This document shows, piece after piece, positions 89 through 34,723 of a DNA stretch of 64,000 bases (its first letter is position 1; every line of letters begins with the position of its first letter). A program made the position numbers and the translations under genes. This DNA is from Bugula neritina (taxonomy: Eukaryota > Animalia > Bryozoa): the NCBI GenBank assembly GCA_964035545.1, contig OZ037766.1:23986126-24050125 (forward strand), given 5' to 3'. A model generated the notes under the pieces. It was not told the origin of the DNA, made no database searches, and saw only the letters and a list, made by a program, of their open reading frames with translations.

Positions 89-3000
89 CAAAAACATCAA
101 TAAAATAAATTGACTTGTCATTCCCATGTGTTTTAGCAAACATGTATGAGCCTTTGGGAAAGTACCAGGTGTATTCACTGTTTGGCAACTGCACTGCTGT
201 CATGTTTTGACCAGGATTTAGAATAATGCTGATGTTTTCCCCAACAGATAAACAAGTACCCACTGCAATGAAAATATGTAAAGTTACATCAAACTTCAAA
301 GTGTTAGAGTTTGTAAGGAAATGATTTCAATACCATGTAGCAGCATAATATTGGCAGATTTCTGTATTAAACAACTAGTCCATGTTGAATCATGAATACA
401 ATATGAAGAATGTATACGGGCTTTTTATAGCAAAAATAGATTAAAGATTTGCATTAATTGACTTTTGCAAACTAAAATATCACGAATACAACACCTACAA
501 CTGTTACCTTGGTCAATATGATCACCAGATATTGCTCTAACATAAAGCTCAGTTGGTTTACATTGAGTATTGGAGTCATTGGAGAAACCAGAACTGCAAC
601 CTTCGCTATTGAGAGAGTCCAGACTGTGGTAGCCAGATTTACATGTGTCACAGTTTAAGCCTTCAACATTTATCTGTATTTACAAATACAGCAGCATAAT
701 TAGAATCGACCAGCATATAATGTTATCACAAATTTCCGAATAAAGTGTTTTAAAAACCAGAATGTACGCATAATGCTTTCAATCTGATTTCCTAAATTGA
801 ACAATCTAACAATTGGTTGCATGGTAAACTTGTTAACAATTTGCCAAAGTACAACTTGCTAAATGCAACAATTTTACCTGATAACTATTTGATAAGATCA
901 GTGTGTGACTATTATTGCTATATATCAGCCATGTGTCTTACCTTGCATTTGCATTGACCAGTCACGCTGTCACATTTCACGGTATTATTGAAGCTGCCAG
1001 CCTCTACACACTGACATAGCTTGCACCCATTGACCCCAAAGTCATAGTAGTTAGCACTGCACCTATCACATTTCAAACCTTCTACTCCGGGCATACACGT
1101 GCACTGCCCATTCATGTCGCACTGTGGACTCAGAGCTCCTGAGATATAATATAATTTGTATAAATGAAGTATTATTAAGTATTATATTATGAGCTTTCAA
1201 ATGAAATCAATTCTATAATCAGCTTCATGTTGAGGGTGACTGAGTGCAATAGTTTGGGGTTCTCGGGTTGGAAATTGGGCGCTCTAATTTCAAATTCAAA
1301 CTTGAGAATCCCAAACTTCTGCACTCGGTCACCCCCAACTGGAGCTGTCTATAAAGCTATTCTTCCAAATGTGTGTCTCAAACAATTTATTTGATTGCTG
1401 TAGAAAAAAGCAAAGGCTCAAAATTTCAAATAATTACATAATACAAGTTATCCGTATATAATGTTGCCGTAATTATTACAAAAGCTACCCATTCATAGCC
1501 ACATTTTTAAATTATCAACTCACACAATTTCTAAACTTTTAAAGTGTAAGAAATGCATTTAAATATCTGAAATACTTACGGAGCAAAATCAGTTATTTCT
1601 GTAACAACTCTATATGTCAATGTATGAAAAATTTGTTTTAAGCTTGATAAACATGCCTAAGCCTGCAGTAATGCATATAACTATTGCCTGTTAAACATAC
1701 ATCCTAGTGCACATACCTATTTCGCTACATTCACACTCTATACACAGATTTGCAGGAGTTTTTCTGAAATAATTTGCTTTGCATTTTTCACAGTGAGGAC
1801 CATCTGTGAAATCTGAGCAGTTCTGGCAGTATCCACCAGAGCCGGTCTGGTCATAGAGGGTTTGGTTGAAGACACAGCTATTAGATTTATTATTACACTG
1901 GCATTCTACAAAAGTCATTTTGTGAGTGAGTTATATTACAGCAAAATTTGCTGCGATATAACTCACTCACGGGACTTTTCTTAAATTTAAATTTAAGAAA
2001 ATTTTAAATATCAACTGAATAATATAATTTGAAATTTTATAAATAACTATTTATGCCTAAGTCTTAGCTGTGATTTACCTTCATTTCTATTTTTAGCCAC
2101 CGAAGATGATCTACTCTTAAAAGCTTTTTTGCTCAACTTATGGCTACTATATATGACAACAATGGTATATATTGTATGCTATTTGAAAGATTAAAAGCTG
2201 TATTATTTGTGGAATATGAAATAAATTGTGCAGAATTATACAGCCATACGTTTTTGAGAAGTAAATACAGCTCACTAACTTATGTTTTTTTAGTAAAACT
2301 TTGACAAAAAGTGTTGAAAATGTTGCAAAATTAGAAAATTATTTAGTTTCATTTGTTAACAAATTATTAGTTTTAGGCCACATTACATTAGCAATTATAA
2401 ATCTCTATAATAAATCAAAAATGCCAAAATGCAGTGTGTAATAAGTAAAGTAAAATGACCCTAATACTATGCAAAAACATTTTGGATAAAATATTCATAC
2501 CTTGACAGGTGTTTGTGCTGAAGAAGGTAGCTCGAGTCCAAGGTGCATCATTGTGAGTCTCTAGACATTGGTTACAGTCAGGGCCAGTAGTTCCATGCTG
2601 ACACTGGCATTCTAACCTAGATTTACCATTTAGAGGGTTGGTCTGTAGCACACATTTGTTAGCGTGACCGTTACATTTGCACCTACAAAATGATTATTCA
2701 GGTACATAAAATAAACTTTAATTCTATAATGTAGATTGTTGTTCCTTGCATTTGTAAAATAGAATAAAAGCCTAGTTATAATATTTTATGCATGCGTTAT
2801 AACACCTTTACATGCAATAAGATTAAGTTTTATAACCTTGGGTTTTACTAACTACATTTGCTAAATGGAACAAAAAAGCTGCATTGTAGTCTTTTTATTT
2901 TCTGCTCAGATCTATGATATACAAAACAGCACAAGAAACATGGCTGCTACATAATATAACTTGTTTTTATTAATCAAAATAATTTGACTATAGTTAGCTA

Positions 3001-6000
3001 AAACTTTTGATTGCAGATTACATAACATTATACGGTCAATTATTATATAGTGCAACTTCAAGTATGCTCTATCTGATGGTGATCGGAATCTCACTAATTG
3101 CAACACAAAGCAATCTTCAGTTTGATAATAGAGAATGGCTTAAATTCTTTTCTAAAGTAGAGTTTTTTTCAGGCGTTTTTATTGCAAGCTATAGCCTTTT
3201 AATAGTTAGCCGAAACTGTAACGAGTTACACATAATATTATGTAATGTATTTACCATCGGCTTTATCTTGCAGTTGAGAAATTTCAATAGCTTCATTGCC
3301 CTTTATGATGTAGCCGACAAAAATATTGCATTCATTAAAAATATATTTTTCCTTAAAATTGGGGGCCTAAGCTAGGTGTTTTCTTACTTATAAGTTTACA
3401 AATTGTATTTATACAATAATGTTTTGAATGAACTTTACCTTTTACTAAATAAGGTCATATGTAGGCTATAGGCTATGGGCTCTCAAGCAAATTGTTCAAG
3501 TAAATAGTATAAGTGCTAACCGACTTTATATAGCTTTTGCAAAAAAAGTTGTATGCTGTAAGTTTTATTACTCCAGCTACAGTTTCTCTCTCATTCTTAT
3601 AACTGTACATTTTTTAAGATTTACCTTCCACCTACAGAGATATCAGATATAGCATAATAGTATGACTGAAGAGTTGCCTTCTCTCCAAAAACCTCATTTC
3701 CAAATGTGTTCAATCGTCTCAATCTGATCTGAATTGCAGTGGCAGTTACAAACTCCTGCAGATTGAAACAAGTTATTATTTTACTGAGCAACTATGTCAG
3801 TTGCAAGACCTATAGAAAAGACTTAGCATAAAGGGAAAGGTAGGTTTTTACCAGTCGAGATTAGTGCAAAAAATGAGTTTACTATTTATTTTGATCCTAA
3901 TTAATACACTATTATTCATTCATGCTATGTATATTAATCATGTCACCATGAAACATAAGACAAAATATGATTAAAATTTAAAAAATAAATCTTCAGTAAA
4001 ATAATGTCAAAAAGGCAGATCTGAAATTTTGTAAATCAATAAATACACAATAGCAAAAATTGAGTTATTGAAAGAGCTTGTGTTTTTAGCTAAAATAGAT
4101 GCAAATTATTTGTTTGAAAATGATAGTTGAGCAATTAAAGATGAATGTTAAAATCTTTGTCATATTAATAGAGAAGTGCACAACTTTTTGATCAATAGCA
4201 AGATATTTTATAATTTAAACATAAATCTTATTCATGAATTAAAACTAAAATTCAAGCTTGAAGTCAAAGTAACTGCCTGCATGATTTATTTGCTGTAATA
4301 ACTTATAATACAGAGATGTATACATGTTTTATCAATTATGAATGCATGCTTGCTATTTTTAGAAAAAGTTCGACTTGCGGAACACAGCTGCTATAAGTAG
4401 GACAATTTTACTGCCAGCCCATGAAAAACTAAATCAATTTGACAATTTTCCTAAACTAAGTTGACACAGTTTACATAACATAAAACACTCAAGAGTGTCT
4501 GGTGTTTTCACTACTGACCTGTAACAACTCACTCTTCTCAAACTGATATGCCTGAGGCCTGTCTGCTAGTGTGCTAAACACAACATTCCCACCGGTTAAT
4601 GGAGATAAAGAGGTGTATTCATTTGTACAGATTGCTCTAGTGGGGGAATCTATAGCACCCTGTAAACAAAACAGGCTATTAAGACTATATTGTTAAGAAA
4701 ATAGAAGTAGATATCTAATTTTGTCTAAAAGAAATATGCCAACAAATCTTTTAGCTTACACTCCCACATTCAACTCTATTATAATATGTTGTGCATATTA
4801 AGTTGAAAAGTTAGATATGTTTAGTTAAACTGATCAATTTCTAATTATATTTAATAAACTTTATAGTTGCTATAAATATTTAATAACACACCTTTTGAAC
4901 CTTAGACGTTTTTCCCCAAAGATATGGATCACCTTTCATGCCTGCTATGGCGTATTAGCAGCCAACAATTGTTGGGCAGACATCAGATTAAAAAATATGT
5001 TTCCACTTTGTTAATTTAATGTGATATATAGATTTTTTTGTCTCCATTTAAAAAGCTACAATTCTGGTTATTTGTCAATCTTCAAGGTATTTTAGAGGTA
5101 TTAGAGGTTGTGTCCTATTGATGTGTTTCTAAATACATAAACACAATAGTAGTTTTTATTCTACATTAAGCTTTAACCAGTTTCTTAGTTCGATTTTATT
5201 TAGCTCAGTTTTAATCATATAAGTTACAAGCAATGTGTTAAGCACTGAATGAAGCTGCTGTATTGTTTAGGTCTAAACTTGTAGTACCGTATTGTGTATA
5301 TTTTCAAGTTTGCTTTGATAGCATTAGAACACATATTATATAAAAGATCGTTTTAAATTTAGTTTAAATTGGTGAGACCATCGTAGCTTCACAGTTATGA
5401 GATTATATATTAGTGTCAGAAAATATGACTTACATTCTGAATGATGTTGTAGGTCGCTAAGCAACTTGAACTATAATACTGATAGGGCTCCCATTCTGAC
5501 CCACTAGTAGTTTTCTTCCAAATAGAGAAACTCTCAGGCCTAGGTGACTGAAATGCAAGTCTTATGTAGGTAACTTCATAAGCTTTACCTGCAAGCATAT
5601 TTATAACTTACCCTAAAATCATCAGAGTGACACTACCTTACAAATGCAAAGACCTTCCTAACAAATTATGAGATGCTTCTTTTATAACCCATGAAAACTC
5701 ACCCAAGTCTAAGGTAATTGTTGCCTGTACCATGTCACCCAACCCTCTTTCTCGGTACTCATACAGTGTCACACTCTGCCACCAGGTGCTGCTACCTTTT
5801 GAAACGATACCATATAATAATGCACAATACTATATAATAATGCATGTGCAACTGGCTTTCAATAAAATGATCAAAGTGATATGCTATAATACAAAAGAAA
5901 CAATATCTACTGATGGCATATTTCAACTATACTTATTGCATCAAATACACAACTTTTGTTTGAGAATTTTCTGTTATTAATATGCTATTTATATGGAAAA

Positions 6001-7698
6001 AATATTTTACTTGGATTTTTTTGCAAACTGAAGTTATCTTCTCTTCAAACCCAAACACCAGAGAAAACCATTTGAACATTATACCAACCACAGCGCAAGT
6101 TAAGTAAAAAGCTAATTAATTCAGATGCAGGCATGTGCGTACTTGCGTATGCATGTGTGTTTAGACATACACACCTTTTGGCTATAGTGCTATTTAAATA
6201 TATATATAAGAAAGCCACTTTCATGTTTCAGAGAAAGCTGCCAGTAATGGATAACTGCCAATCTTTAGTTATACAAACATTAGATGTGACTCAAAGGTTT
6301 TTGTCTAAACAAAATTTCATTCAACTCCCGTTTTCTGCATACCATAACCAAATCAGCAAACTGATTTATTAAGCAAAATCCAGTACTGATGTTGGTGTAG
6401 CTCTCTTCTAAATGTAACGTTTAATACTAATTAAGCTCAGAGTAACTTATATAATTATATTGCCTATCACTTATAGAAGAATTCATTCATTTAATTAAAG
6501 TAGCTATAATCAATGCGTACCATTTAAATCAACCATATTTGTTGCAGGATGTTGCTCAGCTAAGTTGGTAGAATTGGCGTCACAATAACTGCTTTTTACA
6601 GATGATGAAGTTAATGGGTAAAATATTTTGAAATCGCTCAATTTCTGAGAGTCAAACACTTGGTCATCTGATTGAAGCGTATCACCACACGTGTGACTTG
6701 CATCTATCTGAAAAGTAAATATAGCAAGTGATTTTCAAAAATTCAATAAAGCATTTAAAACAATTGGTATATTTCCATGGTGATGAAGCTTGAGTTAGAC
6801 AGAAAAAAAAGGGAGGAGGGGGTATCAGTATTGCTGACTTTTTTTGTTTAAATTTATTATTGTATAAAGTTAAACATTCCAAGTTTATCTAAACATTTCA
6901 CTAGTAGAGGCACAGTTGTGGTCTAATGGTTAGAGCATCCTTTCAATAAAAAGTGTCAAAATAAAATTGAATGTACTAATAATACTAAAGTAGACTATTT
7001 TTACTAAAGCTGAATGAGAAAAACTTTACTAGAGGGTGTGGGCTACAAATGCTTTTTGAAACTAAATTTGAATTTCTATTCATAACACGCTGATGGTTTA
7101 AATATTCAAAATTATGATTTGTTTTACAATGAAATGTGTTTTTGAATGTTGTCACTTTTATACATGTTTTTAAGTATAGATATCAGCAAATAAACTTTCT
7201 AGCTTTAAAGATTCAGTTTATAGCCTGATGTTGAAAAAAGAAAAGATTTTACTAAAAATCTGCGAGCTTCTAGCTATATCAATAGCAGTAATAAGTACAA
7301 TAACCGGGAAAAATATTGCCAGTAGCCATTAGAAATTATTATAATATGCTGCAACTATTTAATTTAATTAAAAATTAACTCGAAGGTTGAATGCTTTAAT
7401 ATTTAACACTATAACTTCCCATGCTTCTAATAAATCTTTTATTGATGCATAGGGGCGTAGTCAAAGTGTGGTCGCCACTGAGTTATAGCGAATTGAACAC
7501 TTTCATATAACTAAATTTAAGTAGATTTACTTAGTATGTGATTTTATTACTTACGGGCAATCCAAAGACAATATTGGAGAAGAAAGGTTCACATCTAATC
7601 GCTTGTCCAGCTGAGTTATAGCAGGGGGAATAACTTCTTTGCCCACTAATTAAATTGCAACACAGTGTTAACAGCACTGCTTTTACTAGCAAAGCCAT
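89..7698 (-). CDS. LAMC1-like: Laminin gamma-derived secreted protein: signal peptide, LN domain, 4 LE repeats, degenerate LE5, then a non-laminin module. 3' end lies outside the window.
   Basis: 11 frame-consistent GT-AG exons: 7698-7555, 6707-6521, 5795-5703, 5588-5434, 4659-4519, 3755-3625, 2682-2501, 1905-1717, 1138-942, 673-508, 262-89. Translation begins [19 protein letters not shown] and contains [50 protein letters not shown] and [23 protein letters not shown]2 ([20 protein letters not shown]) is gamma-type. Confidence 0.9.
1221..1346. repeat. Short imperfect inverted repeat (MITE-like) in an intron
   Basis: agcttcatgttgagggtgactgagtgca...agtttggg pairs with cccaaactt...tgcactcggtcacccccaactggagct. 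Confidence 0.55.
1922..1970. repeat. 49-bp near-perfect hairpin just upstream of a splice acceptor
   Basis: gtgagtgagttatattacagcaaa-a-tttgctgcgatataactcactcac. Confidence 0.7.
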
Positions 7699-9042
7699 GG
7701 CTAAACATTCACTCCAGTTCAGCTAGTATATATAGTGGTTGCTAAAGTGTGGCAGCTATCATATGCTGCCTACATTATATAAACGTTTGAGTGCTTGCTT
7801 GCCAGTTTAGACTGCAATCAACCCCAAAACTTCATCCAGTAAGAAACTCCTAACCATATTATAACAGAATTATTCAGTGTAGCAAGCCACGCCCAACTCA
7901 AAAGTCACGTCCTGTTCCATGGCCCCACCCATTTAGTTTGTTGTCAGTCCAAAAATTGACACCAAATATCAACCCAGTAAAACAATTAACCATGAGATGC
8001 ACCAATTGCTGAGCTGAGGAGCTCCTAGGTTTATTAATCACACAATAATTGATTCTTAATAGATAATATATATCCACTTATCTACGAACCTAGAAGGTCA
8101 ATTATGCTGATACACACATAACGTGTATAATAGATACTTACTATCTATAGTGAATAATCAGGTTCATCTAATGTAATTTTGCACTTATACATATCATGTT
8201 AATGTTTACTTTCCTTCATTTGTTATATTAAATTGCAAAGAAGTTCTCAGAATAAAATTTGATAGTGAAAAGCAACTAAACAAGTTTGTTGCGATAACTT
8301 TTTGCAAGGGTTGACTACCTTCTAAACATTTGAGAGTTGAAAAATTATGTAATTTAAAGTATACGAACTTCAAACAACACATCATTGAAACAATAATTTC
8401 ATCATCATATCTATGGAGGATGTCATTCTATTCCAATTACTGCTAAAATTTGCATTAAATTTAATTTTGAGGAAACTGTAATTGATTTCATACATGCATA
8501 GTCTAGCTACTTTCAGCTTTATTAGATGCGCTGTCTGCACTTTCAACATCCAGATGGATCATTGCTCATGGAATTTTTAGCTCATCCTGAAATTTCTTTA
8601 TTCTACAAACTAGCATTGCCAAATAATAGCTGAAGTAAGTTTTGAAACTTGAAAGCCAACAGAAAATAATTTTTAATTTTATGTTGTCTGTTCTGTATTC
8701 CTGGTGTGTGCAAAAATGTTGGTGCTTTTTTAGCACAAAGGAAATGTATAGTGAAAAGACTTTAAACATTTTATTAAATGATTCATTCAATAGGCTAAAC
8801 AGCGCACATGCACAGTTAATTACCTCTAATTTCTTTTATCTATAACACTGTTTTTGATAGGTGAATATTTTGCATATATAAGCATGTAATCTCCAACTAA
8901 AAATTAACATCATAAGTTTAAAGGGCAAATGCTAAAAAGCTGAATTGAGTATTACTCTTTCAAATTGTGTTAGCAAGCATTCTAAAAATTCACCCCTTAT
9001 AGTTGATATTTTTAGTGATATTCGGAAACCCTAAAAACCCAT

Positions 9043-9644
<602 letters not shown>

Positions 9645-9649
9645 TATAT

Positions 9650-9862
9650 ATGCTAGCATTTTGCATATGCTAGAATTTTGCAATGCTCGTGACTCCTAGG
9701 TAACCCCTAGAGTCACTTGAGCTCTCTGGCCTGAGTTTACACACCTTTTAAATATGCTTTAGTAGAAACATAAGTTTCTACTATTGCGAAGGTGTGGGCC
9801 ATGGTACTCTGTTCTGTGCTGATGAGGGGACAAACCCCGAAACAGCCGCTGTCCACAGATTG

Positions 9863-9866
<4 letters not shown>
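9650..9866 (+). mobile_element. Partial retrozyme-family monomer between (AC)n and (TA)n
   Basis: Near-identical to part of the 271-bp unit at 34131-34727. It ends just after the hammerhead and runs into (TA)n at about 9866-9956. Confidence 0.85.
9813..9859 (+). ncRNA. Type I hammerhead ribozyme
   Basis: tctgtg CTGATGA gggg-acaaa-cccc GAAA cag-ccg-ctG TC cacaga. Intact core, stems I-III pair, GUC cleavage triplet at 9851-9853. Confidence 0.9.
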
Positions 9867-9951
<85 letters not shown>

Positions 9952-10237
9952 TATATTACCGCAAAAAGAATACTGTAAGCAATAGTGCAAGGTAACATCC
10001 CTTTCATTATAATTATTAGTCAGCTTTGCTATATTTGTGTATTACTCATTGAGCTGTCTGTAAATCGAATCAAATAAAAACAAATTCTGACCAGCTCGCA
10101 ACTTCCATCATGCAGTAATCTTTTTATTGCCCAAAAAAAATTTTTTTTTTACTGAAAAAACAATATTCATGATATCACCTGAGATATTTTCCTTACTGTT
10201 GTTATTACCCATTAAGTCTAGGCAAAGTCATGTTAAA

Positions 10238-10280
<43 letters not shown>

Positions 10281-11869
10281 TGTGTAACTTATTTGCATTT
10301 TAATTGGAATACTTAGTTTTATATTTAATTTATAAGTCATTTATTTTGATGTTTAATATGTCAATTCAAATTGAAAATCTATAATATTGCAGTTATGTTA
10401 TACAGCTTGTGATCTGAATGTAGTCTTTATATTTTAATTATTGCATGTTACTTAAAACTATTTTTTTATAAATATATTTGGTTATAAAGATTGATTGATT
10501 ACAACTATAATTGATTATGCGTATAAACACAAATTGATTACATATTAAGAGCATCATTAGTGCTGCAAAATATGACACTATTTACTAATGAGCTGTAATA
10601 TTATTTTATGATGGCAGAATTAAAGGCTAGAATTTCCTTTTGCTGCAAGTTCTTTGTATAAGGAAGAAATAATTATAATCTTAGAGTTGCATAAGATCAT
10701 CATATAACTCTGTCTGAATTAGAGATTGTGTTTTAGTAAAGCAGCAATCTAAAAGATCCAAACAAACAATATTATGTCCTTTCATGGCTATATAACTGCA
10801 GGATTTCTAAATAAGTGATGCATTTATACAAAAATAACCATCAGTAGTTGATATTTTCATAACAGAAAACACTTACTTGAATCTATAATGAAAAAATTGT
10901 TACACTGGCTTATTTTTCAAATGCGCGTAGGCATGATGTAAATTCTGGAATGTCAAAGATGTGCCAATTTCCCACATTCAAAGCAATCCAAATGTAAGGT
11001 TTAAATTACCTATAATCTATCTCTTATACTCTTATACGTTCTAAGATCAAAATACCTGGTGATTATATAAAAAACACATTCATGTGATGAATTTAGTTCC
11101 CTTAACATTCAAGTAATAAATAGCGTGTGTTTTTAAATTTACATAATTATACTATTCAACAAATATGCTGTGAAGTTTTAGATTAGAACACAATTCAAAT
11201 GTGTGAAGTTTATTTCTCACCTGAGTCTCATTATCCTAAAATTTAAATACTTGCAAATATGCACTCGCGAACACAAAAACAAACGCGTCATGTTACTGCA
11301 TAAATTTTATATCCAACTTTAAGGCTGCTGTTATATTCGTGTTGACAATCTGGCTGAACAGGTTCCTACCAGAAGCTCATTCCAGAGCACAGTTTTATAT
11401 TACAAGTAAGTGGAAAACACCATTAGTGTTTTGCTGAAGCTATTTTGTGAAGCAATACATAGTTCTTTCGTTTCTAAAATAACGCAATATATTGTTACAG
11501 TTGCCTATAAATTGACAACTTTTATATTACCAGTTTATTTATTGTGTACTGTAATTGCATTCATTCTTGAAGAGGTTGCTGTGATATTTTATAACTCCCA
11601 AGTACTATATAAAATATTATTTTTAACTTTACCTGTTTTTGTGGTGTCTAACGCAACCTAAAAGTAACAATTTTTGGTGTACAAAAAGACATCATTCTTT
11701 GATTAATTTGTCAACTTTTAATGCATTTTGTACTTTAAGCAGCTATAAAGTCACATCAATGGTGATATAAGAAAGGCTAAGATATATTTCAGTAATTTAT
11801 ACTCTTTATGAAAGTATTTAACAGCTTAGTACTATTGACTTGCAGAGGCCTTTTTGCTTTAATATATGG

Positions 11870-14800
11870 ATGATGAAGGTAGCACGGGATGTCAAAACCA
11901 CTCTTTTGCTTCTTACTGTGTTGGGTTAGTGAAATGTGATATTTTCTTTCCATAATTAACACTTTTTAGCCTTCAAGATCTACTTATCTAAATGAAAATA
12001 GGTGTTTTTGTGTTCTATAAGAAGTTATTTTTGCTGTATTATTTGACTGAAGCATGCATACCTATAGCTATCTTTTTTTCACCTATAATGTGGTGTGAAG
12101 TTTGTTTTTCTGCTACATACATTTCTATAGCTGTATATATGCAGAATGAGATATATGTATGTATATACATATGTTCATATATACATATATGAACATATGT
12201 ATATATATGTATATATGTATATACATTATATTATACTTTTAAATTAAAGATGACAATATAATATTCTAACTACAATGTTGATTATTGGCTGCAGTTGAAG
12301 GTATTCTTCAAAGACAATGCATAATGTTACTAAAATTTTGCTAATAACTGTTAAAATAAAATCATAGGCATTTAATCGTTTTGTAGGCCAACTTCTCATC
12401 GTAAAACATGCAGATGCTGTGCAAGCTTGTGAAGAAAGAGCTTGTTATCTGCCTACAGGGAACTTGTTGATTGGCAGAAGACACCTTCTAGCAGCCTCAT
12501 CAACATGTGGCCTCAACAACTCGCAACAATACTGTATCCCTGGCCGTTCTCACAACCCCAGATGCTACCCTTGTGATAGCAGACAACCGTGGTCAAAGAA
12601 CAACACTCACAGTCATAACATCACCAACATCATTGCTTCTTCTTCAAACAAAAGGCTTAAAAAATGGTGGCAAGCTGAAAATTTGAAAGAAGAAGTGTCT
12701 ATTCAGTTAGACTTTAACGCCGAGTTTCAATTCACACATTTGATTATTATATTCAAAACTTTCAGACCTAAGTCGATGTACATTGAGAGATCTGCTGATT
12801 TTGGTAAGACATGGCACAAATATAGGTACTTTGCAGAAAACTGTAGCCACAGTTTTCCTGGAATTTCTAGAGGTCCAGTTCAGAGTTTAGAAGACTACAT
12901 TATCTGTGAGGAAAAGTACTCCAACGCATTACCAAGAAAAGGTGGTGAGGTTAGTTGGGTAAATAGAGGCAGTTTTTGTGAGTTGTGCAATGCCTCAAGA
13001 ATATGCTACAATAGCAGTAGCAGCTTTTTATGATCTTAATAATATGGCATTCAATAAACTGTGGTGAAGTGCAAAGGGTCATATGTTTTAAGAAAATTAG
13101 TTTTCATACAAATTTAAATGCCATATAAGACTTTTCAACTTGTCAACTTTGCAATCTTAAAATTCAACCGTGCATATAAATTAATGTTAAGTCATTTTTA
13201 GATCTTGAAAAAACTCTGTGTTGCAATAACCTTTGTGATGAAAATATTGTCCCCAAACTGATTTTGCATAACAAAGATTTGATGTTCAACATTACTTATT
13301 TTAGTATGAAACAATGCTGTGGCTTGCGTTTTAGGTTGTTTTCAAAGCTTTGCCTTCTAATGTCGTCCTGAATCCATTTTCTGATGAAGTTGACAATCTT
13401 TTAAAACTAACTAATTTGAGGATCGTCTTTAAAGAGCTGCAAACGTTGGGTAAGTTTAGTTGACTTAACTTTGACATAGAGCCAATTTAATATAATAGTA
13501 ATTTATTAAAGAATTCCCATTTATCTGCTTAAACATTTTGCGCAAGGTCAATAAACTTATTCATGCATTAGAAAAAATACAAAAGCTATATTTGTCATTA
13601 ACTTTAAAGTTGTTCAGTGGCTTTGTGATTTTTCTATATTTTATAAATTTGATTTTTTTTGGTTTAATGAATTATGAAAATTATAATTTTATTAAATATA
13701 AAAAATTGTTAAAGTAGTATATCACAAATGAGCAAACGGTAATGAAAATTGAATAACATTAGGACTAATAATGCATATATAATCAGTACATCAGGGATGT
13801 GCAACAGTATCTTAGTAGAAATATTTTAATGCACAGCTTTTGAGGATGTTTTTGTTGCTAAAACTATATGTTATAGCTTTTTCAAATCTGTAAGCATGCT
13901 CAATTTATGTAAGTTTTAGCCTACCAATTAAAATCGCCAAAAGCATTACATAGTTGTTGCATTTTATGAATAATGTCGCATCTTTTAACATCTTAGTCAC
14001 ATACTCAACTCGAATATGCATTTTAGGGCAAAACATAACAGCTCTAACTCCTCAGTCAAGCAAACAATACTATTACGCTATCTATGACATGGTTGTGAGA
14101 GGAAGTTGCTCTTGTAATGGTCATGCCCCACAATGCAAGCCAGCTGATGGAGAAGATCCTAACACGAGATACATGGTCAGTTACTACTCTCATTATAATA
14201 AATGGATGCTAGTCACATTGTGTAATAGTAAACATACAATGAAATGGTGACACACTGGCATGTCATAACAAGGGCCATCATTTCATGTTGTGACATGGTG
14301 CTTGTTGACAAACATTTATGTCGCATCGTTATGCCCAGACAGGGTGTCACAATACCCTGTCACATCATAGCAGCAAGCTAAAATTCACCTACCAATTGTT
14401 CCTTAGGTATATAAACACCATTGCTTATAGCTATAATGATTAAAGCAACACGATTTAAAAAATATAAATAAATCCTGCTTACCTGCTTTCTACACTCCTA
14501 TGTATATAACTGTTATAAGTGATGGTTGTTAAGGTCTACAGTCAATGTGCGTGCACTCATAATACGAAAGGCAAGAACTGTGAAATGTGTGATGATTTTT
14601 ATAATGACCGACCATGGGCTCCAGCTAAAGGAACTGAAGCCAACCAGTGTAGAAGTATGTATATTACTTACAGTTTATTTGTTTTCAATTTAACAGATTT
14701 TGTGCTTTTTAAAGTTTATTAGGTAAAACTGGTTTTAATTGCCCACTACGCTGTATATAGAGGTAGAACAAACTTACTTAACACTAATTTTGTAAAATTT

Positions 14801-17800
14801 CATAAAGAAATACCTACACTTTGTTTTTGTAGTTTCGGTCTCAATTATAAGCTAACCATGCTTGTTGTAAAGTATGTATAATGCCGTAAAGGTTTCTGAC
14901 TTTTTAGTGTGTGCATGGAAGCCTTTTATCACAATAATTGACAAAAATCAGGTGGACTTATCTCAATGACAAGACAATTATTGTTGCCTTTATGATTTAA
15001 CTATAAGAACGGACTTTATGTTGTTTCACTTACAATTTACAAACTCAATTAGTTCAAATGAAAACTACAATTTTTCAAAAATGTGTGATGTAGTTACAAA
15101 AATCACATTTAATATACCAAAGCAACTCAACTACATTTTAGGGTGTGAGTGCAATAATCATGCGAGCAGTTGCCATTTTGATCCCGCTGTCTACCACGCC
15201 TCGGGAAACGTCAGCGGAGGTGTTTGTGATAATTGTCTGCATAACACTGCTGGCCTCAACTGTGAGGCTTGCAGACCTGGCTTTTACCAAGACCCAGTGA
15301 AGGATTTGAAAGACAGATATATATGTCAGCGTGAGTGAATCACAATATCATAGCATTCGACTACTGATATATTATCGCATTATTCTCGCATTGTTATATA
15401 ACGTATTATTATATTTTATTACATTATATTATGTTATGTTATCTTATTTTATATTATATTGTCTTTTATTCTATTTTCTTGTATTATTGTAAGTTATATA
15501 AGAGTGTATTATATTGTGTTATAATTTATTATATTATAATATATTATGTTATAATCTTTTATATCGTATTATATTATTTTACAATATATTATATTATGCT
15601 TTTTAAATTATATTATATTATATATGGTAGTTCTTCTAGACCAAGCAGCTACATGTCACCGAATAAGCATTTTTAGCAAAAAATCTAAATGGAGGAATTA
15701 TAGTGAAATCACATTAATCGTAGACAGGCAAAAAAGATGTCTTAACTTCCAACGTTTGAACTTGTCCATATAATCTGTGAACTATATAATTGAAGCTCTA
15801 TATATGTGATGTTGTAGCATGTAACTGCAGCTTGTTAGGTGTAGACCCAAACTCCGTGGAGCCATGTAATGAACGAAATGGACAATGCATGTGTTTACCT
15901 AATGTGGTTGGCAGATCATGTGACCAATGTTTGCAAAATCATTGGGGGTTGGCAAGTGGTGCAGGTTGTCTGCCATGCATGTGTAGCCATGAAGGAAGTT
16001 CTTCTTTGCAGTGCAATGAGGTTGATGGACAATGTTCATGCAGAGCCGGATGGAGTGGAAGGCAGTGTGATCATGGTATGCTTTTACACCAGAGTGCTTA
16101 AATAATTCATATACGTATATAATATGATATTTAAAGTGTATTATATTATATAATGACGTGTATTCTATGAATTTGTTTATTTGCTACTTGTAGTAGTTTA
16201 AAAAAAAACTTGAGCAATTTTTTTTTAAATATACAATAAGTTTTCACAAAAACTCACGAACTATTAATTTTAATTCCTTTTTATAAGCTAAAACAATGCA
16301 TATTTTAATCATTATATGTGTGTATGTATATTACAGTCTTATACTTTTTTAGTTATGGAACGGTTAAATAGTTCTTGTCCACATCAAAATCTTACTGGCT
16401 ACTTGATTCCGGGACAAACAAAGGTCAAGGTCAAGCTGCTCGATGACTTTTTTGGTGTTTTGGCAGAAGGAGTTCATCAATTTGTCAACTTATATGATTC
16501 TGAAGAGTGCATTTATTTTGCCAACATTATGAGTGAGTCAATTAGTTGAACACTGCTTTGTAGTAACTTCTCATTAGTGCAATGAGTCATGAGTTATACA
16601 GCTTTTAATACACCCTATACTCATATTTGACAGTGTAACAACTATAAGAGCATCATTATGCATTGGCATGTATACTGGTTACGAATTTATAGTGATATAT
16701 TTGTTATTACCTTCTACCAAGGGGATATAATTTCTTGCTACTGTATTTTACCATCTTTAGGAATATCTCAATAGTTTTTGAAATTTTTTATATGGTTGCT
16801 TTTAAGCCCCTTTACATACCACATCCAAAAGAAACTGCAGGTGTTACAAAATGTTTTTAATTTAGTTGAGTAGTAATAAATAAAAACACAATTGCTTGTG
16901 ATGTGCAAATACTGTGCAAAATTTTGTTTACTTGCATAAATTTTCTGTTTGCTTACACTTGAATATATTGTTTGTATCGACATAGACTCACCAATACTTA
17001 GAAGACTGACGTTCAAAGCTAGCTATGATGATGTGCCATGTCATTTAACTGTGAATTTATTTAGCGTGGTTTCTATAATCAGAGCTTTAAAGAATCAGAT
17101 TGATAACTTTCAAGAAGTTTGCAACAATGGTAAGTTACTCTTTTCAAGATAAAACTTTATTACTCTTATTTACTAAAAAGTGTTTTGAAATATTAAGGGA
17201 ATACTTTAATGCTTATATAAACATATAAAATATTATTTAGACTGTCACATGTCTACTGAGATGTCACCTTCATATGAATGTCAAAGAAATGTGCTGACAG
17301 TCTATTGGCCAACTGACAATGTGTACTCTGTTGACACAAAGGAAGTTCCTGGTGACCTGAGAGTTACTCTGAGAGAGAGGCTGGTTGATCACGAGACAAC
17401 ATATTCGGAGATTAGGGTTCCGATTCTTACCCAAACGTAAGTAGAGCGTAATACTGATAACATTACACAATAGTGTAATGTTATATAGTACAGTGTAATA
17501 ATAATGGTGTAATGTAAGTATAGTGTAATGATAGTACTAATGTAATGCATGTACAGTGCAATGGCGTAAATACTTATATCATGTATAGATATAGTGTCAT
17601 GGTAATACTAGTGTAATGTAATTGTGATGTAATGATAACAATAAAGTAATGCAAGTATAACAATGTAATAATAATGCTAATGTAATATCATTACAGCTGG
17701 GTACAATGTTAAAACTTTAGTTAATTAGCAGGGAATCAGCAGTTTATTAAATTTAATATAAAAAAGCTTGAAAAGTTTTTTCACAGTTCATGCTGTTAGT

Positions 17801-18130
17801 TTCTTTATTTTTTTAGCAAGTTGCCTGTTTGTATAACTTTTTATTAATTCTAATGTGTTTAATGGAAACTATATTTTCATTATCATGATTATTTTAGGTT
17901 GTGATTCTACCAGCGGTATTTGCATTTTTCAAGGGATATACCAGGTTTATAATGTAAAAAGGTTTTAGTCTTGCATGCTGATAATAGAATTTAGTTGTGG
18001 TGCTTTTTATTCTGTTTACAGTGTTAAGGCAAGAAAAAATGTAAAAGGAGAAACGATACAACTGATACTCCGCTCAACCTGTGCTGATCACACCATGACA
18101 TATGACCCTATCAGTGATGTCTGTCGCTAA
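11870..18130 (+). CDS. LAMB1-like: Laminin beta-derived secreted protein, about 692 aa: signal peptide, LN domain, LE1, LE2, two distal-type LE repeats, and a ~210-aa non-laminin C-terminal module. No coiled coil.
   Basis: Exons 11870-11924, 12387-12949, 13335-13449, 14027-14175, 14534-14654, 15142-15330, 15818-16075, 16353-16532, 16986-17129, 17241-17436, 18022-18130 (2079 nt, open to TAA). Beta-LN motifs: [63 protein letters not shown]. Confidence 0.88.
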
Positions 18131-19316: not shown

Positions 19317-21088
19317 CAGTGCTGTGAAAAAGTTTAAGGACGCTTCCCTGTTTTCCATAATAGCAATGTTCCAAGCTAATTTTAAGACATAACTAATGCC
19401 TTTCCATAGGCATGGTGCCTATCAAAATGATCCTTAAAATCTCCTTATCTCATTCATATAAATTATAAGTGTCTCTTTTTACATCCTCTAAAAACTTAGG
19501 TGAAACAATGAGATACTATGCATATATGGGAATTATTCAACGTTCTCACAATTTGTGTGTACTGTAGAACATCAGAATATTTTACTTGAAACATAGAAAA
19601 ATATTATATGTGAATTGTTATACACATTATAGCAGCATTGCAAAACACAGTGCTTTAAATTTTAGTATCAATATTTTGTTGGCTAGCCTTTATTCTCAAT
19701 CACAAGTTGGCAGCGACGAGGCATCGACTTGTACAACTTCTCCAACTCCTTTTCAGTCACGACATGATGCCATGCATGAATTACAGGCTTTATGAGTGTC
19801 ACCTTAGTTGTTGGTTTTTGTGAAGAGACTATTTTAGCCATTCTTGACCATAAATTTCTTATTGGATTCAAGTCCCGGCTTTGTGCTGGCCAGTTAAGCG
19901 TTGAGACCCTCTGCTTTTTCATCCACTTTTTAACAGTTTTTGCCCAATGGCATGGTGCATTGTCATCTTCAAATATGTTAATTTCATTTAAAAAGAAGTT
20001 TTTTATGATTGGAAGGAGTTTAGCATTAAGATTCTCCATATATTTTTGAGCATTAACATCATTCCAGAGCAATTACTGAGTCGACCTACACTTTTTCGTG
20101 TTATGCAACCCTAGAACATAACACCGATAGAGTGCTTATTTGTTCGAAGAATAAATTAGGGGTTATGTTTTTCATACTGGTATCTTTTAACACAACAGTT
20201 TCCAGCATGGTTGTTCACATTAAATATGGATTCATCTGAAAAAATTACTTTTTTTCTAATCATTCACTGTCTAATTACCAGGCTCCCTGGTCCACCGTAA
20301 CCGGCTTTTTTGCTGCTTCTCGGTTGGTTGAGGCTTCCTCTTGCTTTGCGGCCATGTAAACCATGGCTCAGCAATCTTGCCTTATCAGGGATGTTGAAGC
20401 TGGTGTTCCTGTTGATTCTGACTATTCCTTGCCTACTCAAGACTTGTTTTATGGCAATCTTTCTTGCTGATCCCAATGAGAACCTTGTTATCTCTAGGTG
20501 TGCTTATTTTTGGTTGGCCATTTTCAGGTCCATCTGCTACACTACCAGTGTCCATAAACTTCTTGATAAATTGATGTACAGTTGTCTTTACTTTGCCAAC
20601 CTTTTCAGATATTTTCCTAATTGAATAACCTTCTTTTTGCAAGAAAATTATTACAAACTTTGCCTCTGAAGGAAGATTTACAGCTCTCATTTAGTCTATG
20701 GGCAGCACCCAAGTAGACACCATGTAAAATCTCACAACTAAATGACATATTTTAAATTATAAAAGAAAGTTATACTTTATGATATCATGATGCCACGCAC
20801 AAAGTCAAATTTCACTATTTAGCCTTTTGTGGTTATAAAAGTCGATAAACTTTGGTTACATAAAAATACAGGAGTTGCGCTTCCTTAGCTGCCTGTGCAC
20901 TTGGCCCAGAAATGGGTAGAAAAAATCACAACAGCAAGAATTTAGAAGATGGAAATTGTAGAGCACATTCTAAGGGTCATTTTGATATATAGAACTTGCA
21001 GGAAAATATTAAGAACTTACAAGAAATGCCTATTAAACAAGATACATAGAAATTTCTGCAAGCATCCTTAAACTTTTTCACATCACTG
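19317..21088 (-). mobile_element. Tc1/mariner DNA transposon, defective
   Basis: TIRs of about 28 bp (cagtg[c/a]tgtgaaaaagtttaagga[c/t]gct) with TA on both sides. Transposase remnants lie on the minus strand. Confidence 0.93.
19683..20690 (-). pseudogene. Tc1 transposase pseudogene
   Basis: HTH start MRAVNLPSEAK...GYSIRKISEKVG, then FSDES, FEDDNAPCH and DLNPIRNLW (catalytic E of DLNPIEN replaced by R). Split across frames by stops and frameshifts. Confidence 0.9.
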
Positions 21089-21545: not shown

Positions 21546-22171
21546 ACTCATGCATATGTCTTCATTTATTTATTTGTTGCTTCTGGCACTTCATAATAAT
21601 ATCTTATATAATCTGATATGCAGATTTTTTATATCAATTAGTTATAAGGGTTCTAATTTGATTTGTATGTTTATACATGCCATGCAATACTTTGCAATAA
21701 AATTTTAGAATAATATGATTTTGTTCACTGTAATACAGGATAAGCAGAGAGGTGGGAAAATAGGCATCGTTATCATGTGTCATTGCAGATAGGGAGAATT
21801 ATATTCTTTTCAAGTAGAATTCATGTTTGCATCAGTTGAAAAATCTATTAACCTTATAATGCGTTATGTATTTTTTTATTATTGAATTATATACCAACAA
21901 AGATAACGATATTTAAAAACACAACATAATTGCATCAGTCGTTCTGTGGTGCACAGCAACATAGCCTTTGCAAGAACTTTCTAAATCTTTTTGTTCTAGA
22001 AGTTCCCTCTCCTGCCACTCTTTCTCCTAAAACGGAAAAGATCGTCAGTGTTACTCGAAGTATATCATACTTTACACACCACAGGTGATATGGCAAGACA
22101 TTTTCAGAATCTTCAGATGCTATAAAATTAGGAGATATAAGTTTACAAATTTATATTCAACAGTAACTTAC

Positions 22172-24657
22172 CATTATTATATCCATCAGTAGTAATTTTC
22201 TCTGTAGCTTCCACTAATCCATTTCCTTTGGCCATCTTCAAAGTGACATCACTTTTTTTGCAATGCTTAATTCTACCAACTTTTTCCAAACTTTTTATAC
22301 TTTGATTTGGCTGTTCAGTGATAAAGCGCTCATCTTCCTTTATGACCATATCATCTCCAGTTATTTCTCCATCTTTATGCATCAGATCTTCTATATTAAC
22401 AAGCTTCTTTTTCTCCACCAGGATCTCAACATCTGTAATCTTTCCTGATTCACACTTTGATTTTTGTTTCTTATCCTGCTCATCTTTCTCTACCACTAAC
22501 TCATCTTTAATTGTCTGTCCTGATCCATGCTTTGGCTCTCGTTTTTTAACAGCCTCATCTTTCTCCATTACTATATCATCTCTGACCATATCAACAGCTT
22601 CATGCTGGCACTTTTGGTTTTCAACAGGCTCACCCTCCTCTCCACCAATTTCGCCTTTTGCCATAACTCCTGTGTTGGTCTTCAGCTCTTCCGTCTTATC
22701 AGACTGATCCTCGGCCACCACCATGTTATCTCGGAGCATCTCTCTTGTTTCATTCTTTTGCTCTTCTTTATTAACATTCTTATCTTCCTCCAACACCATC
22801 TCATTATCAACCATCTGTTCTGCTCCGAAATTTTGCCTTTGGTTTTCACCAGCCTCATTTTCCTCCCCCTCCATATCATCTCTGACCATTTCTATCACTC
22901 GATGCTTGCCCTCCTTGTTCCCAACAGACTCGCATTGCTCTACACCTATCTCGCCTTCTGCTGAAACTCCTGTTTTATGCTTTGGCTCATCCTTTGTAGC
23001 AGCCTCATTTTCCTCTATCACCATATCATCTCTGACTATCTGTCCTGCTCTATGCTTCTGCTCTCGTTTTTTACTAGGCTCATTCTCCTCTACCGCCTTC
23101 TTATTTTGGACCATCTTTCCTGTTTCATCTTTTGGCTCTTCTTTGTTAGTAAGTTTATCTTCCTCTACCACCATGTCATATTCTGTCATTTTTCCTGATC
23201 CACGCTTTGACTGTTCTTTCTTATCGTGCTCAACTTCTTTTTCTACTGTCTCATCTTTGACCATTTGCCCTGCTCCATGTTTCAACTCTCGTTTCTTACC
23301 AGCCTCATTCTCTTCTCTCTCTATATCATCTCTGACCATTTCTATTACTCGATGCTTGCCCTCTTTGTCCCCAACAGACTCGCATTGCTCTGCAACTTTC
23401 TCGCCTTCTGCTACAACTCCTGTTTTATGCTTTGGCTCATCCTTTGTAGCAGCCTCATTTTCCTCTATCACCATATCATCTCTGACTATCTGTCCTGCTC
23501 CATGCTTCTGCTCTTGTTTTTTACTAGGCTCATTCTCCTCTACCACCTTCTTATTTTGGACCATCTTTCCTGTTTCATCTTTTGGCTCTTCTTTGTTAGT
23601 AAGTTTATCTTCCTCTACCACCATGTCATATTCTGTCATTTTTCCTGATCCACGCTTTGACTGTTCTTTCTTATCGTGCTCAACTTCTTTTTCTACTATC
23701 TCATCTTTGACCATTTGCTCTGCTCCATGTTTCAACTCTCGTTTCTTACCAGCCTCATTCTCTTCTCTCTCTATATCATCTCTGACCATTTCTATTACTC
23801 GATGCTTGCCCTCTTTGTCCCCAACAGACTCGCATTGCTCTGCAACTTTCTCGCCTTCTGCTACAACTCCTGTTTTATGCTTTGGCTCATCCTTTGTAGC
23901 AGCCTCATTTTCCTCTATCACCATATCATCTCTGACTATCTGTCCTGCTCCATGCTTCTGCTCTTGTTTTTTACTAGACTCATTCTCCTTTACCACCTTC
24001 TTATTTTGGACCATCTTTCCTGTTTCAGCTTTTGGCTCTTCTTTGTTAGTAAGTTTATCTTCCTCTACCACCATGTCATATTCTGTCATTTTTTCTGATC
24101 CACGCTTTGACTGTTCTTTCTTATCATGCTCAACTTCTTTTTCTACTATTTCATCTTTGACCATTTGCCCTGCTCCATGTTTCAACTCTCGTTTCTTACC
24201 AGCCTCATTCTCTTTTTTCTCCATATCATCTCTGACCATTTCTATCACTCGATGCTTGTCCTCTTTGTTCCCAACAGACTCGCATTGCTCTACACCTATC
24301 TCGCCTTCTGCTGAAACTCCTGTTTTATGCTTTGGCTCATCCTTTGTAGCAGCCTCATTTTCCTCTATCACCATATCATCTCTGACTATCTGTCCTGCTC
24401 CATGCTTCTGCTCTCGTTTTTTACTAGACTCATTCTCCTCTACCACCATCTTATTGTGGACCATCTTTCCTGTTTCAATTTTTTGCTCTTCTTTGTTAGC
24501 AGGTTTATCTTCCTCTCCCACTATCCCATCTCCGACCATCTCTCCAGTTTCATGCTTTGACTGTTCCTTCTCAACAACCTCATCTTTCATTACCACTACC
24601 TCATCCTCTTTCTCCACACCAACTTCTGCTCCTGTTTCAGATCCATATCTTGCCCAG
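22172..24657 (-). CDS. Large exon encoding a Glu/Lys-rich repetitive protein (25-aa subunits in 150-aa higher-order repeats); function unknown
   Basis: Open for more than 820 codons, with acceptor ttttag at 24660-24658 and donor gtaagt at 22171. A 450-bp period is visible (22861/23311/23761/24211). Possible last exon 22119-21996; upstream exons are unresolved. Confidence 0.7.
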
Positions 24658-27600
24658 CTAAAATATTTAATAATATTAAGCTTCTCTCATATATGCTTAG
24701 TTGAAGTTGTAAAGTTACATGTTGTTTAGTAACTTTTTGCAGTGAAAACATACAGCTATAGAGAAGCAAACAAGCATCTGTAGGCTATTATAGATAAGTT
24801 CTATGCTGACACACACCATGGGGTTTATGCCATCTTCCTTTATGGTGTCAGGAAGAACATATCATCACATCTATATAACTACTGCGCTACATTAAAAGCC
24901 CTTTTTTCATGTTTCCAGCTTAGTCTGATGCTTGGACACTTTCAGTTATGAAGGCTTGCGACAATTATGGAAAATTTTAATCAAAAAATAAGTTTTATTG
25001 AAATAGATCTTCATTGCTATTCATATTTATTATACTAACAGTAATAAATTGTAAAATACTAAAACAACACTGACCTAGACTTATCGGAAATTAAACAATC
25101 GTAATAATTATTTCTTCAGCCGTGCCCTTTCCAGTATCACTAACAACTATTGGCATCTTCCAACCTAATGTGGCATCTATCTACTAAAGCTGAGTTGCTT
25201 TCTAAATAAATTATTATTATTTGCTTGTCAATAAAACTTATTTAATACAACTATATCTGACATAATATTCATCTCAACTTACGAGTCTACAGAGCTCTCT
25301 GCTGTGCCAATCTTCTTGATCACGTAAAAAATGAAAAAGGGCAATAAAAATATGCATATAGTTTGCAATAAAGGAACACTGAAATTAAAAATATCAGTCA
25401 ATAATACCTCCATTTTGTCTAATTTGCATATTCTATCAAATATAGCAATATTTTGATTGTTGGGAAAAATATATAAACCATATAAGGAAATTAGGTGCCC
25501 TATTGTTACAATTAACCTCTACACATTTTTTCGTATATATTACTATTAATAGTACAATGATTGTTCTGATTGTTTATGATATTCCATTGTTTTTACTGTG
25601 AATGTGTTGATTTAGGAGTTGTTTTTCCTAGAAGCTATGTTGCCTGGTACTTAACTTTATGCTTTGAAATTTCCATTCAAAAATCAAATAGCATATATTT
25701 TGAGTTTGAGTAATGATAGGATATATGTAAAATTAGTTTAACTATAAATTATTGTTTTCCAAAAAATATATACCAACAATTGCATTTAGCTTGCCAACAT
25801 ATTCATTTTTTATTAGGTAATTCTATAAATAATAAATACCATTTCAGTGACTTTGAAATGTATTATGTTTATTTGTAAAAACTTTTTATTTAAACATGAG
25901 CTGTGCATATAATATTAAATAATTTACAGTATTATTTATCACTTCTTATTATAATATATTCTTATGTAATACATTGCTACATGTTTATGGGTCACAGTTT
26001 TTTTATGCGTAACTTCAAAATTGACAAAAATATGAACTCTGCCCTATTTTCTTTCTATATGATGTAAAATATCATTTTATAGCAGTAGCAGCTTTAAGAT
26101 GAACAAAACCATAGGATTGATATATTCTGTCTGAGTTCTCAAGCAAACAGAGTCTTAAACATACATGTACATCATAATGCAGCATGTAGCAACCTTTGAC
26201 GTGTATATGCAAGTTTAGGTACCTTAGAAATTATAGCAATACAACCACTGTTCAAAGTGTAACAAACTAACATATTATGAGCAGCTTCGTATGAGATGAG
26301 TTGAAGACATTCATTGAACAAGCTGAGCTCGTGGTGCTCATCTCAGAGTTAAAAGTTGTGATACTCATATTAAACTTAATTTAAATTTACGTACATGCTT
26401 TAAAAGCCATGCAATGGTCAGACTTATTGAGTAAAATTTTAAGGGATAATTAGACCTTGGCCACAAATTGAAAAATTAATAACTTTCAAAAGTATGAAAA
26501 CCAAATGAGAAATCTACACAGCTGACAAGAATATTAGCAGCTAAAGAGGATGTTTTGTCAGTAACCTTGGTTTATTATTCATAAGACAGTGGAATAATTT
26601 TGTATAAATACTTCAAATTAGCATATTTGAAACTTTACAATAAATTCAAGTGTTCGATTAGCAATTAAAATTCTGTGCTACAATAGAAAAATGACAGGTC
26701 TTCGTATCTATTCTAAGTAGAAACACTAATTGCTTAGCAAACTCAATACCCATTTCTGACCAAACTAGTGGTAGTAATTGTTGAGTTAGCAGTCAATGGC
26801 ATTTAGTTAAACACTCTAATTACAACATATTGTATGACTGCTGATTTAGCTTTTAACCAAAAGTTTTTAATATTAGAAAATGTCAGTCTTTCATAGTTTA
26901 TGGTGTGTTTTGGCAACAAATATGTTTTTAATTCCTATTTTTATGTGGTAAATTATTTATTCACTAGATAGTCAGTTTGTCAGCATAGTTAGGAATAAAC
27001 AGTATGCCGTTGGCCAGTGTAATTCATAAATTATAACTCCCAGTTTTTTACTGATCTATGCTTGGCTTTAGCTGTAGCATATACAGTATCTTTGTTATAT
27101 ATATAAATACTGTAGTTTAATGCGCTACATATTTCTTAAGCTAACAAAGCTTTGTTTTTGCAGTAGTGTGTTAATAAAATATGTGTATATGATATTGCAG
27201 CTCCAGCACTGGATGGTAAACTTTCTTGCACTTCATTGATTAAATTTTATCCAAATTTATACCTTGCAAAATAATTCCAGCTTTATCATATTTATTTTTA
27301 AACATTTTAGGATAATTTTCGGAGTTTCTTCAAGTCTGATCATTTTTCACAAATGTTCATTTGATAAACTTTTCATAGTAAAACTTTGTGTAGTTGTTTA
27401 TCATGTTATATTTTAGTTAATATGGATTTCAGTATAGGCCTATTTCATGTTCGAAGAATATGAGTTCTAGCAACTATTCAATTATTTTAATTATGATACA
27501 AAGCCAAAGCATTGACTTACTGAGAAAAAGGATTAAAGAAAAAACTGCTAAACTCTTATTGACAGTATTTTTCAGTTAAGTAATAAGATCATGCAGCCAT

Positions 27601-33998: not shown

Positions 33999-34179
<181 letters not shown>

Positions 34180-34403
34180 TTGAGATATTACGCTCTCATT
34201 TAATGCTCAGCAATGACATTAAATGATTGAGCACTCTCACCATGGTCACAAACTCAAGCTGCTAGCATTTTGCAATGCTCGTGACTCCTAGGTGACCCCT
34301 AGAGTCACTTGAGCACTCTGGCTTGAGTTTACACACCTTTTAAATATGCTTTAGTAAAACTATAAGTTTTACTATTGCGAAGGTGTGGGCCTTGGTACTC
34401 TGT

Positions 34404-34450
34404 TCTGTGCTGATGAGGGGACAAATCCCGAAACAGCTGCTGTCCACAGA
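34404..34450 (+). ncRNA. Type I hammerhead ribozyme, array copy 2
   Basis: Same fold; GUC at 34442-34444. Confidence 0.9.
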
Positions 34451-34674
34451 TTGAGATATTACGCTCTCATTTAATGCTCAGCAATGACATTAAATGATTG
34501 AGCACTCTCACCATGGTCACAAACTCAAGCTGCTAGCATTTTGCAATGCTCGTGACTCCTAGGTGACCCCTAGAGTCACTTGAGCACTCTGGCTTGGGTT
34601 TACACACCTTTTAAATATGCTTTAGTAAAACTATAAGTTTTACTATTGCGAAGGTGTGGGCCATGGTACTCTGT

Positions 34675-34721: not shown

Positions 34722-34723
34722 TT

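Follow-up and report, generated by a model that had tools for sequence, protein, structure and literature searches.

A head-to-head pair of gamma-like and beta-like laminin short-arm genes ending in the same non-laminin tail in the bryozoan Bugula neritina

In this report, we focus on a stretch of 64,000 nucleotides from the 216-Mb genome of the bryozoan Bugula neritina (C2:23,986,126-24,050,125; hereafter the window), and in particular on two laminin-like genes that it carries, one of gamma type and one of beta type. The two genes lie head to head and point away from each other, with their start codons 4.2 kb apart, and both end in the same four-exon, phase-1 tail, which is not of laminin origin. 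C1 to C8 are contigs of this genome, and L019 and L020 are DNA segments to the left of the window; positions are window coordinates unless they bear an L label. Sequence searches were run exon by exon, protein lengths are sums of exon sizes, and the finding rests on this one genome.

The gamma-like gene is on the minus strand, with 11 exons in the window, from 7698 to 89. Its exon 1 (7555-7698) carries the start codon, a hydrophobic segment that resembles a signal peptide and the start of the LN domain, which continues through exons 2 to 6 (6707-6521, 5795-5703, 5588-5434, 4659-4519 and 3755-3625). Exons 7 to 9 (2682-2501, 1905-1717 and 1138-942) encode LE1 to the first part of LE4, and exon 10 (508-673) supplies the end of LE4 followed by a degenerate stub of LE5. 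Exon 11 (89-262) is the first exon of the tail and encodes a small Ig/HYR-like unit that is divergent and has lost its second cysteine. The other three tail exons are found just outside the window, at L019 8830-8690, 8189-7994 and 7574-7463, the last one holding the stop codon, so that the gene ends just left of the window with a product of 735 aa (last exon counted as 112 bp). An earlier note on this DNA, made from the letters of the window alone, had predicted three remaining exons of about 144, 196 and 110 bp; they measure 141, 196 and 112 bp, and the gene does not return to a laminin architecture before its stop.

The beta-like gene is on the plus strand and also has 11 exons in the window, with a start inferred at 11870 and a stop codon ending at 18130, for a product of 692 aa. 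The inferred exon 1 (11870-11924, phase 1) carries the start codon and a segment resembling a signal peptide, exons 2 to 4 (12387-12949, 13335-13449 and 14027-14175) a beta-type LN domain and the start of LE1, and exons 5 and 6 (14534-14654 and 15142-15330) the remainder of LE1, then LE2. Exon 7 (15818-16075) encodes LE11 and part of LE12. The tail begins with exon 8 (16353-16532), an Ig/HYR-like unit in which both cysteines are present, and its exons 2 to 4 (exons 9 to 11 of the gene; 16986-17129, 17241-17436 and 18022-18130) encode a SEA-like core with six cysteines that runs to the stop without a membrane anchor.

All 22 exons of the pair in the window have AG/GT boundaries, open frames and consistent phases. 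Both products have a hydrophobic segment at the N-terminus and none at the C-terminus, and no LF, L4, NTR or coiled-coil exon is found in the window or in the 20 kb to its left; both proteins, we infer, are secreted and devoid of a coiled coil. The introns at the LE-to-tail junctions are only 245 bp (508 to 262, gamma) and 277 bp (16075 to 16353, beta) long, with no other head between. The earlier note had described a head-to-head pair of truncated laminin genes, with a beta-like gene of about 692 aa lacking LF and coiled coil, a gamma-like gene degenerating at LE5, and splices at phase 1 into two homologous exons, 262-89 and 16353-16532. This description holds in each of these points: the two exons, of 174 and 180 bp, are phase 1 at both ends as read from the sequence, and they score at E 4e-15 and 3e-18 in one tail-exon-1 profile, built from rows that included both of them.

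At the beta junction, a separate read contig (15778-16586) crosses the LE-to-tail intron; it comes from a single unlabelled run in which intron coverage is DNA-like, and which may be the source sample. Of the exon variants listed for a second haplotype, five are synonymous and two missense; this haplotype also has an in-frame 3-bp deletion in tail exon 2, and its listed intron indels are of 1-2 bp. We are highly confident that both genes are real and functional as modelled.

Full-length laminin genes, whose presence the earlier note had asked about, exist elsewhere in the genome: a beta gene on C4, in which LF and coiled coil are both seen, and a gamma gene on C8, in which L4 and coiled coil are both seen. 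An alpha-like laminin gene lies on C1, as does a true netrin with NTR, at 14.2 Mb. The domain searches agree with this distribution, since LF (PF21199) is matched only on C4 and NTR (PF01759) only on C1 and C5; at the pair locus, L4 (PF00052) has no match, and the pair genes match LN (PF00055) and LE (PF00053). No exon of the parental coiled coils was matched in the window or in L019 and L020. Each copy groups with its own full-length parent, both by identity and in a tree of one exon (support about 90, not starred), and the true netrin is separate, in keeping with the claim that this is a lineage-specific beta/gamma pair of short laminins that is independent of netrins. Two further genes with LN and LE, at C8:8.944-8.956 Mb and C3:5.95 Mb, are distinct from the beta, gamma and netrin loci and have no copy of the tail near them.

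Compared with the C8 gamma gene from exon 4 onward, the gamma-like gene is 68-81% identical over exons 4-6 (LN) and 72-73% over exons 7-9 (LE), while the beta-like gene is 64-67% identical to the C4 beta gene over exons 2-4 (LN) and 77% over exons 5-6 (LE1-LE2). Between copies and parents, synonymous sites are saturated (pS 0.74-0.76) and non-synonymous divergence is low (pN about 0.19). The only relaxed part is the LE5 stub of the gamma-like gene, where pN reaches 0.35 and the first two cysteines are gone. Frames that are still open despite saturated synonymous sites imply long purifying selection on both copies, and these comparisons indicate that the pair is old and under selection.

The way in which the laminin arms were cut can also be read from the exons. 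In the gamma-like gene, the cut point is the phase-1 intron between the LE5 stub and L4, which is present in the parent as well. In the beta-like gene, exon 7 matches the parental exon of the third-last and second-last LE domains (65% identity, E 7e-42, 135 bits), which we take to be LE11-12 in vertebrate numbering, and reaches at most 48 bits against earlier LE exons of the parent, so that an assignment of this exon to LE3-4 is ruled out. This match places a deletion of LE3-10 and LF between two phase-1 introns, and a new phase-1 donor in exon 7 ends LE12 after its sixth cysteine. The truncation of the beta arm described in the earlier note stands, but its internal deletion, by which LE2 is joined directly to LE11-12, had been overlooked. 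No leftover parental exons are found nearby, in the window or in L019 and L020.

The tail is found far beyond the two laminin-like genes. Its exon 3 has 85-92 matches in the genome and its exon 1 about 70, clustered on C2 and C7, and a propeller exon of about 300 aa precedes the tail in 22 of the 29 loci that were checked. This propeller head has no Pfam match, and one relative carries PF01436, hence the label NHL-like. Other heads are EGF repeats (P0064) or a signal peptide alone (P0052). Searched against 1.84 billion representative proteins, tail exon 3 matches 85, among which is a complete propeller and tail protein encoded in a single frame on an intronless, transcript-like contig; all named relatives of the tail in the databases come from Bugula neritina. 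Judged from these sequences, the tail is not private to the pair: it forms the constant C-terminal part of a family of about 90 copies, most of them predicted NHL-like secreted proteins. The earlier note had described a non-laminin module shared by the pair: the module is indeed non-laminin in both genes, but it is common to these approximately 90 copies, which rules out a private tail. In some family members on C7 (L036, L037 and L038), tail exon 1 is present in two to four copies in tandem, which implies that this exon works as a repeatable spacer. Some 29 propeller-only proteins (P0091-P0119), mostly of 260-290 aa and from short metagenome contigs, are 42-55% identical to the head of P0012, which suggests that the family has been sampled in environmental data.

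No Pfam family, SEA (PF01390) included, matches the tail, either as single exons or as whole tails. In the predicted model of the tail relative P0002 (pLDDT 92), the core is a ferredoxin-like alpha/beta fold with six cysteines, for which SEA domains are among the top rows of the fold comparison, with Z up to 5.5; tail exon 1 is predicted to form a partial Ig-like sandwich, with Z up to 4.8. The end motifs of tail exon 1 are reminiscent of HYR. HYR (PF02494) has no match in 36 copies of the exon, none of the HYR matches of the genome is a tail exon, and a profile comparison of the exon with HYR is not significant. Going by the predicted models, the likeness to SEA is one of fold, not of family membership, and that to Ig/HYR is probably of the same kind. 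Two other origins were considered for the tail. That of a degenerate LF, the end of which exon 1 resembles by eye, was rejected on the lack of any PF21199 match, the lack of any match to a profile of the parental LF and the alpha/beta model; derivation from an SVEP1-like gene at the left finds no support, with no tail match in any HYR-bearing locus.

The local tail copies have a composite history. At the nucleotide level, the first tail exons of the beta-like and gamma-like genes are only 57% identical, and an exon tree of weak resolution does not place them as sisters. Exons 2-4 of the gamma tail are 92-94% identical to those of the left neighbour (12 synonymous and 16 non-synonymous changes), and a second copy of exon 1 arrived alongside them. 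This copy, behind the gamma-like gene at L019 ~9160-8995, is dead, with a lost acceptor, a 4-bp insertion, a stop and a GC donor, and gamma tail exons 2-4 remain open, which fits the use by the gamma-like gene of its own older exon 1. Exon 3 of the right neighbour is 97% identical to that of the beta-like gene over 185 bp, and the four local copies of exon 3 (17241-17436, 41929-42124, L019 8189-7994 and L019 1229-1034) are 91-94% identical, whereas identity among the same four falls to around 55% over most of exons 1 and 2. The likeness of exon 3 and the divergence of exons 1 and 2 point to repeated gene conversion limited to the exon, which partly reached the downstream intron.

NHL-like genes with the tail stand on both sides of the pair, at L019 ~3760-640 (minus strand) and at 39890-42335 (plus strand), the latter with its NHL-like propeller exon at ~39890-40744 and a four-exon tail at ~41380-42335. 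Directly left of this cluster, at L020 ~8140-340 (minus), is an SVEP1/polydom-like gene with vWA, EGF-like, three sushi and two HYR domains, which extends past the DNA covered here. The spacer between the start codons of the pair contains an AC microsatellite of 593 bp (9047-9639) and, at ~9805-9865, a short stretch related by eye to a 271-bp unit repeated in 2.2 tandem copies at 34130-34730. The rest of the window holds acidic long open frames on repeats of 75, 150 and 450 bp (22146-24686 and 34646-35656, minus) and a cysteine-rich open frame of 335 aa with two 318-bp repeats (31277-32281, minus), none of them with a Pfam match, as well as Tc1/mariner-type transposase fragments (19686-20690, minus) and an intact retrotransposon polyprotein of 1318 aa with reverse transcriptase, RNase H and integrase (58438-62391, plus).

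To consider what the two proteins might do, we carried residue positions over by alignment to the vertebrate chains, and we take these positions to correspond. On this basis, the gamma copy keeps Y147, R149, S213, F259 and F264, and the beta copy keeps E204, has the same residues as its parent at positions 68 and 208 (Gly and Lys), and is one residue shorter in the loop after 68. The LN surfaces are mostly intact, and altered at the putative beta-gamma contact. In vertebrates, a weak dimer of the beta and gamma tips is later closed by alpha, and the isolated beta and gamma short arms dimerise (PMC9852560, PMC3531742), while netrin-4 binds gamma and thereby blocks polymerisation (PMC12328585).

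We propose that a 5' portion of each laminin gene, beta and gamma, was duplicated and joined, via phase-1 introns and by exon shuffling, to the four-exon tail of the expanded family. This tail would be a shared stalk for folding, displaying or anchoring any head attached to it. As they have no coiled coil, neither chain could enter a laminin trimer. The beta-like and gamma-like proteins would be made together and form a beta-gamma half-node via LN-LN binding, either between themselves or to the tips of genuine laminins, and this half-node may cap or loosen the laminin lattice, or tie tail-bearing proteins to it, possibly during budding or metamorphosis. A pairing of the two copies is plausible, and we favour it because just two laminin-tail fusions were detected in the genome, a beta and a gamma lying adjacent and head to head, with parents on different contigs (C4 and C8).

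Among the possible readings, we place first that of co-expressed LN-LN binders that would cap the lattice or tether to it, a preference that we hold tentatively and that comes near to an even call; after it come independent heads, a separate polymer, and dead or wrong models. Its fuller version, a co-regulated bryozoan half-node with re-tuned LN surfaces on a stalk common to about 90 secreted proteins with variable heads, is a possibility that we would hold with considerable doubt. Several observations weigh against the preferred reading. The gamma copy has Asn at D261, where its parent has Asp, and in the beta copy the residue aligned with S200 of human beta1 is Arg, where its parent has Ala; in vertebrates, the node is disrupted by S200R (PMC9852560). 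Vertebrate beta and gamma dimerise weakly, at about 20 uM (PMC9852560). The distance between the start codons leaves a shared promoter unsupported, and the adjacency of the two genes could reflect insertion into a cluster of tail genes, not joint function. No RNA run covering the locus was found among the sequencing runs, and no orthologue of the fusions was found in other species by protein searches limited by query length, a metagenome scan and Atlas features. The two substitutions also favour a reading that we regard as possible yet less likely, in which the chains are two independent, unpaired heads on a common stalk, each binding ligands other than laminin (guidance receptors, glycans, microbes or surfaces) in the manner of gamma-type netrins. 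The tail does carry other heads, above all the propellers, and the separate placement of the two first tail exons in the exon tree suggests separate captures; however, this account leaves unexplained why the sole two captures are a beta and a gamma arm set head to head, and the residues of the LN polymerisation surface are mostly kept.

It is also conceivable, although rather unlikely in our view, that the pair builds a matrix or adhesive of its own (cuticle, frontal membrane or larval glue) through LN-LN and tail-tail contacts, as a laminin-independent polymer common to the NHL-tail proteins. The chains are both predicted to be secreted and are bivalent in principle, the SEA-like fold predicted for the tail occurs in surface-coat proteins, and the tail family is large; yet nothing indicates self-association of the tail, and no alpha-type fusion that would close a three-arm node was found in the genome. 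Finally, we consider it very improbable that the models are dead or wrong, that is, decaying laminin fragments that happen to lie next to tail cassettes belonging to other genes, or a join introduced by the assembly. The lack of an RNA run would fit such a case, as would the relaxed LE5 stub and the recent, 92% identical copy of the left neighbour's exons in the gamma tail, on which constraint is judged from the few changes given above. Against it stand the frames that stay open at saturated synonymous divergence, the short junction introns without another head, and the separate DNA contig that spans the beta junction.

A short arm with a new C-terminus is the known design of netrins and LaNt proteins, and the prevailing view is that laminin short arms gave rise to netrins two or three times (PMC9788559). 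The locus represents the same step taken twice more, with parents, cut points and donor cassette all readable in one genome, so that the exon-shuffling route can be traced. The novel elements are the matched pair, the beta arm with its internal deletion and the tail, an undescribed extracellular domain expanded to about 90 copies; our literature search, for which most subscription journals were beyond reach, found no paper on the fusions, nor on bryozoan laminin short arms, NHL expansions or the tail family. A natural beta and gamma pair without a coiled coil would test the three-arm polymerisation model outside vertebrates. Were the half-node real, it would connect a recognition-type protein family with the basement membrane, or with an extracellular polymer separate from it, and the netrin architecture would have been re-invented as a matched pair.

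Among known systems, netrin-4 is the closest in design to the beta-like gene, with a laminin-beta LN, few LE, no coiled coil and a new C-terminal domain, and either protein can in principle take the beta site on the gamma LN (PMC5141367, PMC12328585). As to a netrin-4-like block of polymerisation through tight binding to the gamma LN, the residues compared give a mixed picture. The beta-like gene differs in that its tail is not NTR/C345C, its LE set is LE1, LE2, LE11 and part of LE12, and a gamma partner gene adjoins it; moreover, its LN exon matches laminin beta1 far better (E 2e-56) than netrin-4 (1e-30) and derives from the genome's own beta. The gamma-like gene similarly recalls netrin-1/UNC-6, which has a gamma-type LN, LE repeats and a non-laminin C-terminus and is secreted. 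Its exon 4, however, shares 75% identity with laminin gamma and 47% with the C1 netrin, and it keeps four LE domains and the gamma intron pattern, whereas the true netrin with NTR is a separate gene. Thus, of the traits of netrins, the pair has LN and a short LE array without coiled coil, but neither NTR/C345C or a GPI anchor nor an LN of netrin lineage. LaNt alpha31 is likewise a laminin short arm without coiled coil, which can modulate the lattice (PMC9788559), but it is an intron-retention isoform of an alpha gene, with the same LN as its parent, while the pair consists of separate, diverged genes with a 200-aa tail of predicted fold. The pair has the exon structure of the laminin beta and gamma chains themselves, is 64-81% identical to them across its LN and LE exons, and has LN followed by LE as they do; it differs by the missing LF (beta) or L4 (gamma), the missing C-terminal coiled coil, the internal deletion in beta and the foreign tail.

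As for the tail, its predicted core resembles the SEA domains of MUC16, dystroglycan and TMPRSS6, which are also extracellular and ferredoxin-like alpha/beta (best Z 5.5, rmsd 5.4, 118 residues), but this Z is at the level of a common fold and tied with unrelated proteins, identity is 9-13%, and the tail combines the absence of a Pfam SEA match and of a membrane anchor with six conserved cysteines. Its real counterpart is the bryozoan family that joins an NHL-like propeller to a mini-HYR and a six-cysteine domain (KAF6023477.1, KAF6019239.1 and KAF6021840.1), in which tail exons, phases and cysteines are the same, the difference being that the heads of the pair are laminin short arms, not propellers.

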